From Utricularia gibba (Eukaryota > Plantae > Magnoliophyta), in NCBI GenBank assembly GCA_002189035.1, contig NEEC01000004.1, forward strand, positions 5,146,001 to 5,210,000: a stretch of 64,000 nucleotides of DNA, written 5' to 3'. The position numbers and the translations under genes are program-made. The stretch's first letter is position 1. Every line of letters begins with the position of its first letter. Positions 2,040 to 11,993 of this stretch are shown piece after piece. The notes beneath the pieces are model-generated. The model saw only the letters and a list, made by a program, of their open reading frames with translations, searched no databases and was not told the origin of the DNA.

Positions 2040-2490
2040 CTATGCACAGATACAACAGAAAAACTTCAAAATCCCGGTTTCTTGTTTTCCGGAGTAAATA
2101 CGGCGGAGACGGCCCCAATCAAGGAATCGGATCACAGTTTTCCTGAAATTAATGTAGCAGCGTGTGACGGAGAAGAAGGTGGCTGGCCCTAAATTTATAA
2201 TACCGTTGTGTTGCGCAAGATTGCCCCCGATCTCCCTGCTAACGAAATGACACGTGGATGGCTGAGATGGAGTTTACTAAACATTTCGTCGTCGCATACG
2301 TATTCCACCTGGATTACTGAGCCCTGGCCCACCAACAGCTTTTTTCCGGCCCAGGATTTTTTTCATATAGGCCCATTAAGGCGGCCCATTATTACAATCA
2401 GACAACTGCCATAAACGAGAAAAATTAGAAATAAACCTTTCAAAACGTTTTTATTATTAACTTTTTTAGTTGTTCTGTAAAAATACATTC
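2040..2490. promoter_or_regulatory. Probable bidirectional promoter between NHX (-) and the zinc-finger gene (+)
   Basis: Four GGCCCA site II elements at about 2326, 2348, 2370 and 2383; TATA-like TTATAAAT on the minus strand near 2193-2200; head-to-head gene arrangement. Confidence 0.5.
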
Positions 2491-3377
2491 GAATGGCGGA
2501 AACTCGTTGTGGGAAGAGATGCAACATGTTGATGGTTTCTCTACGATGAGAATTTCTCCGCGAGCATCGAGTTTGATTTCTATTTTCCCAATGGATTTCC
2601 GTTAAGACAGTGGTGATATCTGGGAAATGTTCTGTGGATCAGGTATTGACGCGGTAATGAGGCCGGAAAATTGTTGGTTCATTGTGTTTATTGATGATGG
2701 TTTAGTCGGTGTTATATATTGGAATCTTGTTAATCGTTCATCAAACTGCGGTTGTTATCCTTGTTTACTTACATTTTGATTCCACTTATGGATATGCTTC
2801 GCTGTAGAGCAACGTGTAGTTCTCAAATCTCAATGCAGTTTAAAAGTGGGGGTTCTTGAATTTTTTTTGTGGAAATTACGGCGTGGTATTTGGTCTTATA
2901 AAACTGGGATCGGCCTTTGTGAGTTTAATGCTAGTGTATGCATTTTCTAAAATGTGGGTTTTTCCAAGTATGTATCTTTCGGGCTTCATTTCGGAGATCT
3001 AGCTTTCAAAAGTATTCGGTGCAAAGGATACATATATGTATAATCGTATGCATTCGCATTATTTCATGTTGAGAAATCATGCATGTAACGGCGACCTGAT
3101 TTTTTCCTTGGCGTATCTTTTGTTGCAATTTCTTGTTTTCTCTCTTCCTATTGTTGCTCTATCCATGATGTTGATTATGTTCATTTTTTTTTGTAGTGAA
3201 CTTGAGATCTACACAACGGCTTCATTTGACTGGTGTGGCTTTTGGCTACGGAGAGATAGCCTCACCCTGTAACAAATGTCCTTTGTCTTTTCACTGAAGA
3301 AGATATATTGGTGATTTGTGGTATGATCGAAGATCTGCTGCTAGAGTTCGAAGAGCTTAAAAGTTTTCAGTTTTTTG

Positions 3378-6065
3378 ATGGTATGTGGTGCTGGAAGAGG
3401 AAAAATGTCAGCCTTGACAAGGCACCTGGATACTAGAAGTGTTTCTCAGGGTTTAACAGGTAAAAGTTTGAGGCCATCTAAGGATTACCTAATGTTTCCT
3501 TGTATCCTATGTTCTCTGATCTCCTCACATGGGGATTCCACCATAATTTTTTACATCAGTGAATTTTTCTCTATGTTATTCTACCGTAGAGGAAGCGGGG
3601 CAGCAGAAGCTAACTGCTCAGGATGTGAGAAGCAAATTACTAGATGCTCATGAAGCGAACTTGCTCGATGAAGAAGGTTTGAGATATAGATGAACTACTG
3701 AAAGACCCTGCTTAATCTTAAGGGGCCATGAAAATATAGCAATCATCTTGAGAAAGCGTCTGTAGCAATCATATAGCATTCATACTGGCTCAGACAATAG
3801 GGAGTGCCATCTATCATTTCAACATAATTAGATTGCTGTGCAAATTCCCCATGTTTTGGCTTGATTGGAACTCTACCTAATTGTTGTTGTCTTCATCTCG
3901 TAGATATGGATATCTTTGGCTTGAGGCCGATGACTGATCCTCTACATTTGGTAAGCTTGTAAATTTTACTATTATTTTATTGAGAGGATATGCCAGAACA
4001 CACTGTTGTATGTCAATGTGTCTTGATATTTTGAGATGTGGTTACAAAAGAAGAAAAAACATCTCATGTAGAACATCTTCGAGAGACTCTCCTCCAAGAT
4101 ACGAAAAATAGTAATAATTATCTTTGTTTTGTAGGTATGCTGTAATGCCTGCAAGAAGCCCATCAAGGCGAGCCAGTATGCTGCACATTCAGGTATCCTT
4201 TTTCTTTCTCTTCTATTTGTTGATTAGATTTGGAGATTCTTAGCTTTATTTTTGTTATTATTGATTTGTTTCCCTATAATTAGAACAAGACTTGTCATTT
4301 TAACGTCTGCTCAATCTCTGTTGCTCGTATTCATCAAAAACACGTTGTATTCTCCTCCTAAAGGGATCCTAAACGCACTTTGCTTCTCCAAACTTTTCAG
4401 ATTTTTGTAAGTCATTAAGCTCTGCAGCAATAATCAGCATGGGAAACGCAGTTGATGGGACACCTCAACGGAAAGAGCGGAAAAAAATATTAAATGCACG
4501 CAGGAGTATCCTTCACCCATTCAGCATTTGATGTGGTTTTTTGGCGTTCCTCAGTTCTTCGAAAATGAAGTTCTGAGTAATATCTTACCGAGTAGCTTCA
4601 GGCATTTGATCTGGGATAGGTGGTTATTCCGCAAAGTTGTGGCATAAAATTCTTAACCTATGAAAGAAAAAGCTTCTTCATCGCGAGAGCCTAGAAAATT
4701 CCATTCTGTGAACTCTGGTGACATGGCTGCTCCACAATGTGGTTTAGATAGGCAGATTCAAATGGCTTGTTCGGCTGAAGAAAAATGTACTCTCTTACTT
4801 ACCTTCACCTCTTATCTTCCTGTTAGTTTTTACAAACTGTAGTTTGTTAATATGCTACTTGCACGTATGAAATTGGCAAGATAGTCGTACTGATATCATC
4901 TTCCGGGATTAAAGTGGTTTATTTGTTATTGTTCATTATTGTGATCTTACCCATTTCTTTCTTATTGCAGTAAAAGTGTGTCACGGTTTAACTCCAAAAT
5001 CAAGTGATCCACCCCAAGGTAGGTGGAGTACGAAAAGTGCAACAGATGCAACAAAACCTTCGGTGAAACCGGTCAATGGGTACTTTTTTATGCATATGCT
5101 TTCTTCTTTGCTTTTCAAAGAGAATATATACTTGTGTCCAATTTTTCTGTATTTGATTTATAGATTTATGCGTGCCTTGATGTTTTTCTGGTGAAGGCTA
5201 TTGAAAGAGTAACAGCTTTGCTGATGTATGTCTGTTAGGATGACTGTTGAGAATTCACAAAACACAGATGCTACAAGCTCTTGCAGGAAAGTCGAGGTTC
5301 TTCCGTGTATGTTTCTTTATCCTATTAGACTAGTGAATAGACTGACATGGACTGACTAGTATTAAGCCTGGAACTTGCTTGATTCTCTCTCCTTTATGCT
5401 TATCTTATCCTATAGAGAGGTTTTCCATTGCTGTTGGCAGGGATAAATTCCGTCATAACATCCAGTTTTTTAAAACAATCAGATACTCTGACTCCGCTGG
5501 CAACGAAAATTTATTATTCCCAAAGGACTCATCATCTCCGTACAGCCATCAGGCACATGTTCTTCGAGAGCTCGAAAAACGAGTCTAGCCCTGGGTTCTC
5601 AAATGTAGATGCATTACAAGTATACGTGGACACCCAGGTCAGTTTGTTGGTAGAGACTGCTTATTTCACCATAAAAAAACATTGCTTTATGGAACTAATC
5701 ATGGATATGCATCAGTTCAACTTGTGTTATGTGGGATTTAAGCATTGGCAGCAATGATGTTTAACGTATTCGAACATCAGTTGTGGCTTTATCATATGCT
5801 TGCTCAGGAACACAGCCAGGCACCTGATCAAATTCTCGCATCAAGCTCAGAGGCACACAAAGGCGAATCATCCGGAGTTGCCCATCAGCCCATGATGACA
5901 ACCAGCTTGCGTCGCACTATCAACGAGGGCGCAGCATCTTGCAACCCAGATCCTTATTCTTTCATTAGCAATTCAGGTAACCAAATCTCAGCATTCGAAA
6001 CCCCCCCTACCCCTCAACTGTTCTCAGCATCATCTGATGCAGGAACCTACCTCTCTAATGGCTGA
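3378..6065 (+). CDS. Uncharacterised multi-exon protein with a C-x2-C-x11-H-x3-C zinc finger resembling the ataxin-7/Sgf73 N-terminal (Sgf11-type) finger
   Basis: In-frame exon chain: 3378-3459 MVCGAGRGKMSALTRHLDTRSVSQGLT; 3590-3676 EEAGQQKLTAQDVRSKLLDAHEANLLDEE; 3904-3950 DMDIFGLRPMTDPLHL; 4135-4192 VCCNACKKPIKASQYAAHS; 4401-4505 DFCKSLSSAA...QRKERKKILNARR; 4667 onward KASSSREPRK...; 4971 onward; about 5440-5637 PLATKIYYSQRTHHLR; last exon ending ...GTYLSNG* at 6065. The middle exon boundaries are less certain. Confidence 0.85.
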
Positions 6066-6720
6066 TGGAGGGAGGGAAGTGTCCCTGCTGTACAAACAAG
6101 ACTCCTCAAGAAGAATTTTGCTTGGTGAAGCTCACTGCTCTGATTTTTTGAAGGCTATGGCTGCCTCCATATTTTAACCCTGACAAAACTAATCAAAGAA
6201 AGTTGCAGTACATATCAGCATAGCATCAGCCAATCTTGTAACCCCCTTTGGACACACATACATGATTAACTGTCATTATATGAAACAGCAGCCTGGGCTG
6301 AAGAATCATTACAAGTTATTTTGTTCGTTACCCGTGTCGGATACTCCTCACCCAGGACACGTTCTTTGCATCTTTTAGTATCACAAAAACCCCACAATTT
6401 TTGAGGTAATTCCCAGTAGTTTTAGACAAGAAACCACCGTGAATAGTCAACCATGTGGGCGGCGATGGTGTCGGTGAGTGGCGCCGAAAAGGACGTCATT
6501 TTAACGGACCATACAGCGTTCCGTTCTCTGGGTTTCATAGTTTCCTGGTTTTCTTATTCCAGGGGCTTGAGCTGTTTTCCTTCGATACCACTCACTCCAT
6601 GCCCCGTGCTTATCCTTTTCCCTGCTCCCATATAAGCAAAACCCACGACCAGATAGAATTCAACAGCAGGTAAATATCCTACCCGAAGCCGAAAGATCAG
6701 ATCTTTATCTATCAATCTCG

Positions 6721-6924: not shown

Positions 6925-7329
6925 GTAGAAGAAGTTAGGCATCTGGGTTTTGTTTGTAAACCACGAACAATGGTGTTTTAGGGATCAATTTTGATCTGGG
7001 CTTTTCGTTGAACTGTAGTTAGAATCTTGTTGGTGGGTTTTGTACATCTTGGATGAGCAGTGTAGTGATCTATCAACCTTCAAGTTCTGTTTTTTAATGC
7101 TTTGGCAAGCTCTGATTTCATCAAATGGCCGCAACTACAGTAAGGCGATGCTTCTTCCCATTTGATAACTAGAACTGTTACATAAATGAGAAATCTTGAT
7201 GCATAAAATCTTCTAACTTTCACAAGGGGCATCATCATCTTCATCAATGGCAGATTTCATACTACGCTATTTACAATGCTAGGAGGTAAACGCAAGTGGA
7301 ACCTCGTTGCACTGTGGAACAATCCATCT

Positions 7330-9045
7330 TCATCTACTTAGCTCCCACCTCGACTCATGCGACTCCGGCGGCTGCGAAAGCGCCCGGACGAACCTCGTGA
7401 AGACCGGGAAATGCTCTGGGGAGAAGAAATAAGCCCCCATTCTTTGATACGTGAACATCTTAACTTCGGCAGACAGCTTCTTCTTCATCTGCTCAAAGCG
7501 GCCTGAGATTGTGGAGTTCTGGCCCGACACTTCTGTTCCATGTTTACTGCAACACGAGATGATCTGTGCAAGAAGCGCCTCAGGGTTCGACCGTGGCTGG
7601 CCTTCATCCGACAAATCGAAACCGGGGACGACAACCGAACATGAGTGCCTTGAAAACATCTCAGCAACGGCGTTGTAGCCATCTCTGCTGTCTGTGTTGT
7701 AGAAGCCGGCGGTGAGCTCCGAAGGGTGGCTCCGGGACTTGTACGTCGAGTGCATGAGAGGGATTCTGCCGGACAATGAGACGCCGGCATCCTTGAAGGT
7801 GGAAGCAGCTAGTGACAGCATCCTATCTCCATGTTGAATCAGCTGGTTTGAATACCAAGAAAGGAAGAATTCACCATATGGTGTCTCCCAGGATCCACCA
7901 TTTTCCGCAAAGAAGCCTCCGTAGAATGGACAGAGGTGATAGGCAGGGGCATCATGGGGACCCCCAAGTCCCCAGAGAGGATTCCCAGTCTTCTCTGCGT
8001 GATGCTTGAGGTTTTCAAGCATGTATTTGTCGTAACACTGGAACTCTCCACCGCCATTACGGTTCTTGCCGTTCACAGATGGGTATTTCAGCTCACCATC
8101 TGGTCCAAGACCAACAGAAACACCCTGCATACACAAGCAGCAAACTACTGATAAGATGCTACTCTCCATTATCCTTCATCTCAGAAGCTATTTGCAAGAT
8201 GCGCAGAAAATACATCTTACCGTGATGGTTGAACCAAAGAACGGTGAGAATGTAGATCTGAAGCTCCCAAAGAATTCTTCATACACCTCAAGTGGAGTCT
8301 TCCCATTCAAGACAGGAAGCTCATCTACTGCAAACGACAGAGAGTCCTTATAATGATGCCCTGCTCGGTCCTTGAAGTAGATATCGGAATTGGAAGCACC
8401 GATCTTGTCAACCCATTGAGGGAGTGGGATTTTAGCTTCCTGTGATCCATGGAAACATAAAGAAATTTGAACCTTGAGTCCCAGCTTTTGCAACAATTCG
8501 ACAATCGCCAGGTATCCTGTCCAATCGTACTTGGACTGAGCCTCGTTTTCGACTACTCCCCACCACAAGGGGAGTTCTACACCATCCACTCCGAGTAATT
8601 TCAAAGCTTTCAGGCCAACAGAGATTGCTCGCTCATGGTTTATCTTGTTGGAGATGGAAACAGTATCCAACGGAAGCCCCACGAACAATTTCACCGATTC
8701 ATTCTGCAAAACAACAGGAAACAAGCAGGGTAAGCAAAATGTTAAAAAAAAAGGGATGCCCTCTTCTTCCAAAGAAACAAGACTCACAGGAAAGGTCTCC
8801 GATATCTTTGATGCCTTTTCAGAAACAAGCGGTTGTGCTTGGGAAGAAGCAGATGCGGATACTCTGAGGGAGAAGCCACAGGCAGATCTCGAAAAGCACA
8901 AATTTACTAGACCACAACCGAAGCCAGATCTCTTCAGTTCATTTGCACCGCCCAAATTCACAAGATTCCTGCTAAAGCTACAAACACCAGAATCATCCCA
9001 CCTCCCAAGAGCCACCTGCGAGCTCCCACAAACAAAAACCTCCAT
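7330..9045 (-). CDS. BAM9: Catalytically inactive beta-amylase, BAM9 type (GH14), 3 exons with plastid transit peptide
   Basis: ATG 9045 (MEVFVCGSSQ); exons 9045-8788, 8703-8221, 8124-7330. Motifs KLFVGLPLD, GVELPLWWGVVE, VGLGPDGELKYPS, QCYDKYML, WGLGGPHDAP, FTYQRMGAYFFSPEHF. The GENAL motif reads SGQNS. Confidence 0.93.
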
Positions 9046-9600: not shown

Positions 9601-11993
9601 TCGACAGCCCACATACCCATGACTTGTTGCTGACTCAGATCCGCACACCGATTTCAAAAATAATTAAATTTAATTAAATGCCCAGGATAACGATTCCCAA
9701 TTTTCGAATTCAGACCACCACCTGCTTGTCGGTTTGTCCGCTCAACGTTTTGGAAAACTCCTGTCCATAAAAAAAATAAAGTTTTTTTTAGACCAGAAAA
9801 AATTAGCCGAAACTGATCAGTTCATTGGGAAGCGCGTCCAGAAGGTTCTAGATATAATGGATATCAATAGGCCCATGGGAGGTATGTATATGAATATTTT
9901 CAAAAGGCCCATTGGGCTGCAAGGCGGAATATATCAGAAAAATTGACTAGGAGGGCCTGGTGGACTGAAGACTGGACCGGGCTGAGCAGCAACAGGCCCA
10001 ATAACAGGCGGCGGAGGAGGTGGCGGCTCCGACGACCCAAAACCTGGCGCGGAAAACCCACGGCGATCAGTGAAGCACTCCTCTACGAGCCAGCAACAGC
10101 TGAAGAGGTAAACACTGGTGGAAAATAGAGAGTCAAGGATCCCATAACGAGGCCGAGTTAAGAGTTACTAACCAGGAACAGATACAGAGTACTCACTCAC
10201 CAGGAAGCTATGGCGGAGCACAAGGTGTGAAGAAAGGCGTTCCCCACGCCGGGTCTTCGCATGGGGGGGGGGCTCCATTCTCCTCGTAGCATGCTTCTTT
10301 CTGATGAATGCCTTGAGATTACCAGAAACCAGAAAGTTCTCAGAAATTAAAACGGGTACATGTTCAGGGTTTCCACCGACGGAGATCTGAGAGATACAAA
10401 AGCACACTGCGGCGGTGGGGTTTGACTTGGAGCAACGCTATCGTTATTCTCTGCATGGCATACGCGTGGATTTACTACTGATCACGTCTTGTTCTTTTTA
10501 CTTTTTTCTTCTTGCTGTTTCCATGAGAAGGGGATTTGAAGCTTTGGGATCACGGGCCTTGGAGGGGCAAGGGGGCTGTGTACGGATGACATTGGGTCGG
10601 ATCTCGGGTTATGGGCTGCAGGATACTGGCCCATGACCCGCTGCTCATCCCTCCTAGTTGATAAAAAGTTTTACGATGAATTAATTTACATAAAAATGAG
10701 AGATTTAAAATATAAAAATTAGAAAATTGATGGGGCACAAATAGGATTTGATTAATCGGTTATTGAAAAAGGGGGCCAAAAGGTGTTCTAGCGTAAGCCG
10801 ACAAATCGATAACTATCAAAGTTTATCAACGGCGATCATTGTGCATAGTTTGAAAAGTTATCGAATTATGGTAAGTATAGAACATGCGGCACTTATTCGA
10901 AAAGCAGGACTGCAGTACGTATAGTAATCGTAGAAAGCACCCGACACCTACAATACTCAAAATTCGATCAAATCAACATTTCTTATAAATACAAGAAACC
11001 CGTAAGAAGAAGAGGTTGGACTTCATGCTCTACATCTTGTATTTCTCCCTCTCCCTTTAATTGAGTGAAATCATTTTTTTCATCGAGCTCCAACAATTTC
11101 GTGGTTTTTCCGTTTTTCGATGGTTTCCACGTAAAAATACATGTCTCCATTATTTTTGTTAACCTAACTATACCAAGCATTACACTTGAACCTTTATCGG
11201 GTACGACTCATGTAGCTATATCCAAAACTCGAAAATCAGTCTTTGTATTAACACCAATTTTTGCACTCAACAAAAATATTATTCAAGAAAAAGTGATTAT
11301 GATATATTTAGTATAAAATCTTATAATTATATATATTAATATGAAAAAGTAAATAAATTTTAAATATGTTAATAATGCATTTTATTAACATAAAGTTGGA
11401 GGACACACGTGTAGCTGCCCGATTGGATACGCTCCGTGACTCGGGATTTATTTGATTTATTATTATTTCTGGGTTCTCTTTTTTTTTTTGGTTACCCGGC
11501 GGCGGGCAGCGCGGGCATTGAGTGATTACTACATGGGGCCCACACGGTGTTGGTGGTACCCTTTGGTGGGCCATTCCTTATCTAGAAGCACGACGCAGCA
11601 GGCATCGGTCCCTGTGGCTTTGGTATTCGTTAGAAATAATTCTAAACTACAATTCCGCCCCACGCATGTTTCGAAATTATACTTTGTTGCCTTAACTTTA
11701 CAAAACTTTTCCTTTGACCACACTGTAGGGGCGAATTTGTAGTTTTTGAAACATACGGGTACTGAATTGTCTCACTAGTCTGACCTATCCATCCGTTTTC
11801 GAAGTGACACGTGGCTGTTCCTAGTTGGGTATCTCTATAATATTTGTAATAATTGTGTCGAATTTTATGTAATAAATAATTAATAGTCCGATATTTAAAC
11901 GCAATTTTTAACATACTAAATACTACAATAAATAAAGATAGTAATGCATCAAAAAGACGAACGGACAGAGTCGGCGTCTACTCAAACATCATC

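Follow-up and report, generated by a model that had tools for sequence, protein, structure and literature searches.

A gene on the + strand of the 64,000-nucleotide stretch of Utricularia gibba DNA analysed here (contig NEEC01000004.1, positions 5,146,001 to 5,210,000; hereafter the window, in whose numbering coordinates are given unless another locus is named) occupies positions 2481-6313, and its coding sequence (CDS, 3378-6065), which is composed of 11 coding exons, is transcribed and spliced. Profile searches, together with a gene tree confined to plant members of the family, support the assignment of this gene as an orthologue, by descent, of ATXN7/Sgf73. The N-terminal finger region of Sgf73 in yeast and of ATXN7 in human is placed between the two lobes of Ubp8/USP22, which it keeps in the active form together with Sgf11 and Sus1/ENY2. 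By analogy with these systems, we put at about 0.6 the probability that the plant orthologue still acts with UBP22, SGF11 and ENY2 in the deubiquitination (DUB) module.

For Arabidopsis, rice and Vitis, SGF73 has the entry "not defined" or "not detected" (PMC4604261, PMC4532415); it was not found in green plants by PSI-BLAST or HHpred (PMC6128693), and is reported in the literature as not detected in monocots and eudicots; the entries marked "SGF73 detected" cover liverworts to the ANA grade (PMC7915528). The original prediction for this DNA, that of a plant ATXN7-like finger protein, had stated that reports from Arabidopsis cover UBP22, SGF11 and ENY2 and leave out SGF73, which agrees with these papers (PMC6128693, PMC4604261, PMC4532415, PMC7915528, PMC8194025). 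Our results show that eudicots and at least some monocots retain an ATXN7/Sgf73 orthologue that plant papers call absent, and that this orthologue escapes searches begun from yeast SGF73, perhaps owing to the decay of its SCA7 domain.

The peptide quoted in the original prediction is encoded exactly by the + strand exons 3590-3676, 3904-3950, 4135-4192 and 4401-4505. The C-x2-C-x11-H-x3-C finger attributed to it is present in the spliced product, with the zinc ligands Cys 4141-4143, Cys 4150-4152, His 4186-4188 and Cys 4406-4408, and is divided between two exons; because the fourth ligand sits in the following exon, no single open reading frame shows the finger, as had been noticed. The predicted junctions were sought in RNA, and every one of them was found in assembled RNA contigs (four runs from three studies). 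The stretch of human ATXN7 given in the original prediction also proved accurate, given that phmmer aligned the window peptide with ATXN7 residues 128-169 at an E value of 5.5e-4 in a library of 177,635 PDB sequences, in which yeast Sgf11 reached E 0.21. The block E-D-M-x-[IV]-F-G-x2-P-x2-D-x3-L-V-x-C-N-x-C-x11-H has the same spacing in ATXN7/Sgf73 and in the plant family to which the window gene belongs.

A profile built from the N-terminal regions of 30 eudicot members matched in the same library only human ATXN7 (E 7.8e-5), 9ynu_Q, which is a fungal "SCA7 domain-containing protein" (E 0.047), and Pichia Sgf73 (E 0.049). A profile of seven orthologues that bear an SCA7 domain matched only five distinct PDB sequences, all of them ATXN7/Sgf73: human ATXN7 at E 1.6e-10 via two collinear stretches, the finger (117-173) and the SCA7 domain (342-396), 9ynu_Q at 8.4e-9, the ATXN7 SCA7 domain 2kkr at 1.1e-8, and the fungal Sgf73 of Pichia and S. 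cerevisiae at 2.5e-7 and 6.6e-6, respectively. Neither plant profile matched Sgf11 (3m99_B, 6tbm_O) or the SCA7 domain of ATXN7L3 (2kkt_A) at E values up to 10, although 2kkt_A and the S. cerevisiae/Pichia Sgf11 pair are contained in the library; as a control, the SCA7 domain of ATXN7 itself matched that of ATXN7L3 (2kkt) at 2.9e-5. The plant SCA7 helix, K-R-x-V-x-G-R-x-x-x-Y-D-x-L-L, aligns with those of ATXN7 and Sgf73, whereas ATXN7L3 aligns with ATXN7 over the first 31 residues only. The window protein matched the SCA7-bearing profile at E 4.7e-43 (computed with Z set to 5.8e9, that is, 5.8 billion sequences), collinear from residue 1. It is because of the chains that the SCA7-bearing profile matches, the match of the window protein to that profile and a gene tree that follows the species tree (see below) that we regard the gene as an orthologue of ATXN7/Sgf73. 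Both family profiles prefer ATXN7/Sgf73 to SGF11, and their matches to ATXN7/Sgf73 chains bear out, as far as descent is concerned, the proposal of a plant ATXN7-like protein.

Single-sequence phmmer searches of PDB with a full-length relative or with the exon of the conserved block III (see below) gave nothing useful, and the ATXN7 match was lost from a profile of full-length eudicot proteins, probably through composition correction. In a protein-language-model search, which we take as a lead only, the nearest non-plant cluster was "Ataxin-7-like protein 1" (0.90, 190 shared features).

The seed-plant family and its SCA7 domain

A search of 1.84 billion cluster representatives with the 65-amino-acid (aa) block III exon (window 5443-5637) returned 22 plant proteins, including full-length ones of 390-443 aa, and searches seeded with full-length members returned 254, 313 and 345 significant proteins, of which the best 120 per search (360 matches) were listed. 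The window gene belongs to a family of seed-plant proteins of about 340-470 aa that persists in nearly all the seed-plant orders sampled. Common to its members are an N-terminus M-V-C-S-x-G-S-G-R-M, a helix ending E-A-D-E-A-N-L-L-D-E-E-D-M-H-V-F-G-L-K-P-M-T-D-P-L-x-L-V-C-C-N-A-C-K-K-P-I-K-A-S-Q-Y-A-A-H-A-E-L-C, a basic patch K-P-P-R-K-E-R-K-K (in which K-x-P-x-K...K-K is near-invariant) and block III, P-x-P-L-A-T-K-x-Y-Y-S-Q-R-N-x-R-L-R, whose P, P-L-A and K positions do not vary from Ginkgo to eudicots; a C-terminal motif ...S-Y-S-F-A-G-x-x-G-x-x-L-G-T-x-Q-Q-x-x-G-S-V-P-V is usual. The N-terminal block is the best conserved part of the protein, with a mean column identity of 77% over the first 130 residues of 30 eudicots and all four ligands invariant.

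Closest to the window protein are Lamiales proteins, with 46% identity to that of Handroanthus. Vitis LOC100855402 is a member of the family, and so are proteins of oil palm, date palm, Acorus and Anthurium, which place the family in monocots. The search seeded with a Protea protein brought orthologues from Amborella, Victoria, Ginkgo, Taxus and Cryptomeria at 44-55% identity over 90-100% of the query, and a search with the N-terminal region of a Malvales member had Laurales, Solanales, Lamiales and Fabales proteins at 66-71% identity among the matches listed. Brassicales members were not found among the 360 matches listed (the best 120 of each of three family searches), which is suggestive, as far as the best 120 matches per search can be taken as a guide, of Brassicales members that are absent or unusually divergent. 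A maximum-likelihood tree built from 52 members agrees with the species tree, in the order gymnosperms, ANA grade, magnoliids and monocots, basal eudicots and core eudicots, and the window gene falls inside core Lamiales with support of 100/98. The family is vertically inherited, and the window gene is its Lamiales orthologue.

The SCA7 domain (PF08313) is absent from the window protein, from all sampled Lamiales and from most eudicot members. The remark in the original prediction that no SCA7 domain is visible was right for this gene: the SCA7 model has no match in the window protein or in the sampled Lamiales, and the C-x9-C-x5-C-x2-H pattern is not found in the window protein. The gymnosperm and ANA-grade orthologues match PF08313 above its cut-off (E 5e-7 to 3e-14), besides the finger model PF08209, and carry their ATXN7-type SCA7 domain downstream of the finger, in the same order as ATXN7/Sgf73. 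Only six sequences, all from gymnosperms or the ANA grade, have the complete C-x9-C-x5-C-x2-H ligand set, and the zinc ligands of the domain are lost in every mesangiosperm member examined. Among magnoliids and basal eudicots (Magnolia, Persea, Tetracentron, Proteaceae, Macleaya and Stephania) the SCA7 model still gives about 10-38 bits, and in Vitis, Camellia and Actinidia it gives 7-10 bits.

The gymnosperm and ANA-grade orthologues share the exon structure of the window gene, including (in Amborella) a U12-type intron, and differ from it in that their SCA7 domain is an intact two-exon one, whereas the window gene has only a decayed stub of the first exon. In Amborella the domain is spread over exons 10022-10120 and 10296-10421 of the locus (L001), the latter being an extra exon with the second half of the domain, that is, the His ligand and the R-x-V-x-G-R...Y-D helix. 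Neither Handroanthus nor the window has an exon between the counterpart of the first SCA7 exon and the block III exon. That counterpart in the window is coding exon 8 (5239-5306), the end of which preserves the first half of the domain only as a decayed remnant (Cys 5282-5284, ...C-R-K-V-E-V-L-P); the stub, ...S-S-C-R-K-V-E-V-L-P at 5276-5305, aligns with the C-G-V-T-T-E... stretch in the SCA7 domains of gymnosperms and the ANA grade, as well as with exon 10022-10120 of Amborella. The intron that follows (5307-5482) lies at the site of the extra Amborella exon, according to the exon maps of the Amborella and Handroanthus loci. Since the domain is intact in gymnosperm and ANA-grade orthologues and one exon has been lost, the absence of SCA7 here is a secondary loss, the second-half exon being gone in Lamiales. 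The progression from intact through decayed to deleted thereby provides a dated series for the loss of a zinc-binding domain beside a near-invariant finger.

It was also observed that the counterpart of window exon 5239-5306 is present twice in the Handroanthus locus (L002), at 6525-6596 and 7311-7382, about 790 nt apart and with identical translation, which reflects a tandem duplication of the exon or else an artefact of the assembly.

RefSeq names several early-branching orthologues after the Selaginella "SCA7 domain-containing protein" SELMODRAFT_431321, which, like the orthologues of Ginkgo (Gb_24146), Cryptomeria, Taxus, Amborella and Victoria, is of the same family as the window gene; these proteins probably underlie the "SGF73 detected" entries (PMC7915528). 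Other automatic names differ, and include "SAGA-associated factor 11" (UniRef), "SCA7 domain-containing protein" (Actinidia, Prunus), "Ataxin-7-like protein 1" (Anthurium) and "SAGA-ASSOCIATED FACTOR 73" (Salix koriyanagi). A study of this plant family was not found in the literature searched under SGF73-like, ATXN7-like and SELMODRAFT_431321 names. The link to ATXN7/SGF73 thus exists in some automatic labels and not in the literature searched, and the loss of SCA7 may be the reason that this SAGA subunit is given as missing in plant papers.

Proposed role in the deubiquitination module

As an orthologue that has kept its role, the protein would most likely dock its residues 40-100 on UBP22-SGF11-ENY2 and serve there as a fourth subunit with a modulating effect on H2B deubiquitination. 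The parts kept under strong conservation are the N-terminal helix with the finger block, the basic patch and block III. The R-K-E-R-K-K of the basic patch looks like a nuclear localisation signal, and block III, which with its conservation from Ginkgo to eudicots must have some binding partner, is the candidate site of contact with SAGA or with another partner; outside these parts the protein is predicted to be disordered. The original prediction also raised the possibility of a DUB module not tethered to SAGA; the SCA7 domain is indeed gone from the window protein, but block III, a second strongly conserved block, is still there. An AlphaFold2 model of a Lamiales relative, made with 36 aligned sequences, has a mean pLDDT of 46 and is confident (around 90) only at the finger, with weak helices before the finger and in block III and disorder in the remainder. 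A confidently predicted finger in a disordered protein, a predicted feature that the family has in common with ATXN7/Sgf73, is characteristic of subunits that fold upon binding to their partners. The window protein differs from ATXN7/Sgf73 in its length (340-354 aa vs 657-892), in the lack of a polyQ tract and of the SCA7 domain (a lack shared by all sampled Lamiales), and in having no detectable similarity to the SAGA-core anchor region of Sgf73/ATXN7; it has plant-specific blocks instead (P-L-A-T-K-x-Y-Y... and, in relatives, the C-terminal ...G-S-V-P-V).

The speculative idea that block III corresponds to the SAGA-core anchor of Sgf73, or to the "block III" of ATXN7, was unsupported, given that its matches were only adiponectin and the ribosomal protein eL30, which are attributed to chance. 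The language-model neighbours of the block III stretch were SCA7 proteins, at just 0.64-0.68, and are again a lead only. SCS2A (AT2G19390) has been reported among four plant-specific SAGA subunits, and the possibility that the family represents SCS1/2A/2B was rejected, as SCS2A is AT2G19390 and neither paper describes a finger or SCA7 protein.

Several observations weigh against a continued role in the module, and many of them are what would be expected if the gene were an ATXN7/Sgf73 orthologue by descent whose mesangiosperm copies stand outside the DUB module and SAGA, being repurposed or drifting to loss, and if the plant module were truly a trimer. When Arabidopsis SGF11 and UBP22 were isolated by tandem affinity purification (TAP), only the UBP22-SGF11-ENY2 trimer was obtained, this trimer is active on H2B in Arabidopsis, and the authors of the soybean work also tested the trio for H2B deubiquitination (PMC6128693, PMC11358545). 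As the trimer is active, a fourth subunit is not obligatory. Interaction data for any family member were not found in the literature searched. The window protein is missing SCA7, the namesake domain of the family, and the loss of its ligands extends to all the mesangiosperm members examined; block III had no match to ATXN7/Sgf73 with three profiles at E values up to 10; and, to judge from the lack of Brassicales members among the matches listed, at least one large order seems able to do without the gene. The window copy itself has a long branch (0.89, the median being 0.22) and a premature stop by which the conserved tail is lost: the TGA at 6063-6065 occupies the position of the first Q of the C-terminal Q-Q-x-x-G-S-V-P-V of its relatives, an in-frame remnant, G-S-V-P-A-V (to 6083), lies past the stop, so that the conserved C-terminal motif is cut off, and about ten C-terminal residues are lost in the protein of this species. 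The RNA contigs show no difference at the stop codon 6063-6065. Because the in-frame continuation still reads ...G-S-V-P-A-V, the removal of the tail appears recent, and the stop would represent a recent truncation, or possibly a read-through. Together, the long branch and lost tail suggest faster evolution outside the finger block in this lineage, and the long branch and truncated C-terminus may reflect relaxed constraint. We nevertheless consider it less likely that the orthologue has left the module. The part that serves the DUB module in yeast and human is the very part that is best conserved in plants, with its ligands invariant; the family is kept in nearly all sampled seed-plant orders, with a tree that follows the species tree; the window gene is expressed and correctly spliced; and a loss in Brassicales would itself account for the Arabidopsis trimer.

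The family could alternatively be a second SGF11/ATXN7L3-type protein, whose N-terminal helix and Sgf11 finger, followed in early plants by an SCA7 domain, would reproduce the domain order of human ATXN7L3. The UniProt automatic name "SAGA-associated factor 11" points in this direction, ATXN7L3 too combines an Sgf11-type finger with an SCA7 domain, and the family resembles Sgf11, ATXN7L3 and plant SGF11 (At5g58575) in its zinc-finger class, in a D-[IM]-x-[IVF]-[FN]-G motif 12 residues ahead of the first Cys and in an N-terminal helix. It also weighs against an ATXN7/Sgf73 identity that the sole Pfam match of the window peptide is the 33-residue Sgf11 finger model PF08209 (25.0 bits, near its cut-off of 26.4), which is the Pfam match in all 30 eudicot members tested as well (E down to 6.6e-7) and scores 17-25 bits in full-length eudicot proteins and 26.6-31.8 bits in those of gymnosperms and the ANA grade (27-32 bits in gymnosperms). 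PF08209 covers just the 33-residue finger core, which is common to the Sgf11 and ATXN7/Sgf73 families. The Pfam model of the Sgf73 finger, PF18508, recognises Pichia Sgf73 and matches weakly in three of the 30 members, and the finger segment of ATXN7 matches neither PF18508 nor PF08209. Because of this, Pfam cannot separate ATXN7/Sgf73 from Sgf11. The fold does not discriminate the two families either, because the Foldseek ranks against PDB are mixed and the query model has low confidence: nothing was found under E 0.27, the top ranks held Sgf73 and Sgf11 chains of the yeast DUB module about equally, another point against the ATXN7/Sgf73 assignment, and the insect SGF11 and ATXN7L3 listed among Swiss-Prot models are unreliable with such a query. 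What makes an SGF11-type protein improbable is that the family profiles match only ATXN7/Sgf73 chains in a library that contains both Sgf11 and the ATXN7L3 SCA7 domain, that the plant SCA7 helix aligns with ATXN7 and Sgf73, whereas the alignment of ATXN7L3 with ATXN7 is limited to the first 31 residues, that the Sgf11_N or ATXN7L3B-type helix domain, which binds Sus1/ENY2, has no Pfam match in 18 full-length members at E values up to 1, and that the characterised plant SGF11 (At5g58575, Os05g28370), shown to bind UBP22 and ENY2 (PMC6128693, PMC11358545), is a distinct gene. Finally, a chance resemblance, due to an unrelated small zinc finger or a splicing artefact, would agree with the shortness of the finger and with its weak matches to UBZ, LIM and TRAF-type fingers; it is hardly credible, and is refuted by the RNA junctions in three studies, the two collinear blocks at E 1.6e-10 and the match of the window protein at E 4.7e-43.

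A retained ATXN7/Sgf73 orthologue that acts in the module would have wider consequences. Plant chromatin papers ask how the H2B deubiquitination module connects to SAGA, and the family described here is a concrete candidate. In a broader and more tentative proposal, which we would not yet favour as a whole, flowering plants never lost SGF73: an SCA7-less orthologue in monocots and most eudicots would dock on UBP22-SGF11-ENY2, with block III linking it to SAGA or another partner, and Brassicales would have lost the gene. If so, a trimeric, SAGA-independent DUB module would be a peculiarity of Arabidopsis and not the rule in plants. An absence from Brassicales, if true, would explain why TAP of Arabidopsis SGF11 and UBP22 yielded only the trimer (PMC6128693), and conclusions drawn from Arabidopsis on the plant DUB module may then not generalise.

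Gene structure and transcripts

The CDS runs from the ATG at 3378 to the TGA at 6063-6065 and encodes 340 aa (with acceptor 5483) or 354 aa (with acceptor 5441). GT..AG ends are found at all junctions, namely 3459/3590, 3676/3904, 3950/4135, 4192/4401, 4505/4667, 4786/4971, 5079/5239, 5306/5441 or 5483, 5637/5808 and 5976/6043. Nine RNA runs contain 9-38% of the sampled words from 3300-6300, and the upper shares, towards 38%, are near the exonic share of this interval.

All the exons lie on the + strand. A non-coding first exon with the 5' leader is placed at 2481-2642, its start being approximate; a 162-nt loose end of an RNA contig from run X5 was placed at 2611-2640, and a GT donor is found at 2643. 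The second exon (3197-3459; RNA contigs span 3195-3457) holds the CDS start (MVCG...). An in-frame stop is found ahead of this ATG at 3342, and the proteins of relatives begin with M-V-C-S. A 37-codon upstream open reading frame (3323-3436) overlaps the main ATG in a different frame, and the first non-coding exon contains several more ATGs; these features point to possible translational control.

RNA junctions delimit the exons that follow. Coding exon 2 (3590-3676) encodes the predicted helix ending ...EANLLDEE, as placed by the AlphaFold2 model of the relative, and coding exon 3 (3904-3950) encodes D-M-D-I-F-G-L-R-P-M-T-D-P-L-H-L, the ATXN7-like motif upstream of the finger, which aligns with ATXN7 131-146. 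The finger core, with the Cys codons starting at 4141 and 4150 and the His codon at 4186, is in coding exon 4 (4135-4192), and the fourth ligand is followed by the basic patch R-K-E-R-K-K (4469-4486) in coding exon 5 (4401-4505). Coding exons 6 (4667-4786) and 7 (4971-5079) are variable and, from the model of the relative, predicted to be disordered. Coding exon 9 (5483-5637) carries block III, which reads P-L-A-T-K-I-Y-Y-S-Q-R-T-H-H-L-R-T-A-I-R-H-M-F-F (5494-5565) in the window. It is followed by coding exon 10 (5808-5976), which is supported by RNA contigs, and by the last exon (6043-6313), in which the stop codon precedes a 3' untranslated region to about 6313; RNA contigs reach 6310-6313.

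Both alternative acceptors of exon 9, 5441 and 5483, which are 42 nt apart, are used in RNA contigs, and the 5441 form gains 14 aa. Because the 5483 form reads L-P-Y/T-L-T-P-L-A-T-K, as do the Lamiales relatives, we regard it as the main isoform (340 aa). The 66-nt intron 5977-6042 is in frame and is kept in some RNA contigs, where its retention adds 22 aa. One contig from run X6 has an alternative donor near 5018 (5018/5239), which would shift the frame.

The intron that follows the basic-patch exon (4506-4666) begins with GTATCCTT, the U12-type donor consensus, and has TTCTTAAC about 10 nt ahead of its acceptor. The same donor, GTATCCTT, is found at this intron in Amborella (about 6131 of its locus) and in Handroanthus (about 5213), and the intron looks like a U12-type intron conserved across angiosperms. 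The preceding intron (4193-4400) also begins with GTATCCTT in the window, where Amborella has GTTCGG and Handroanthus has GTTTCA; this U12-like donor is not conserved and may be fortuitous.

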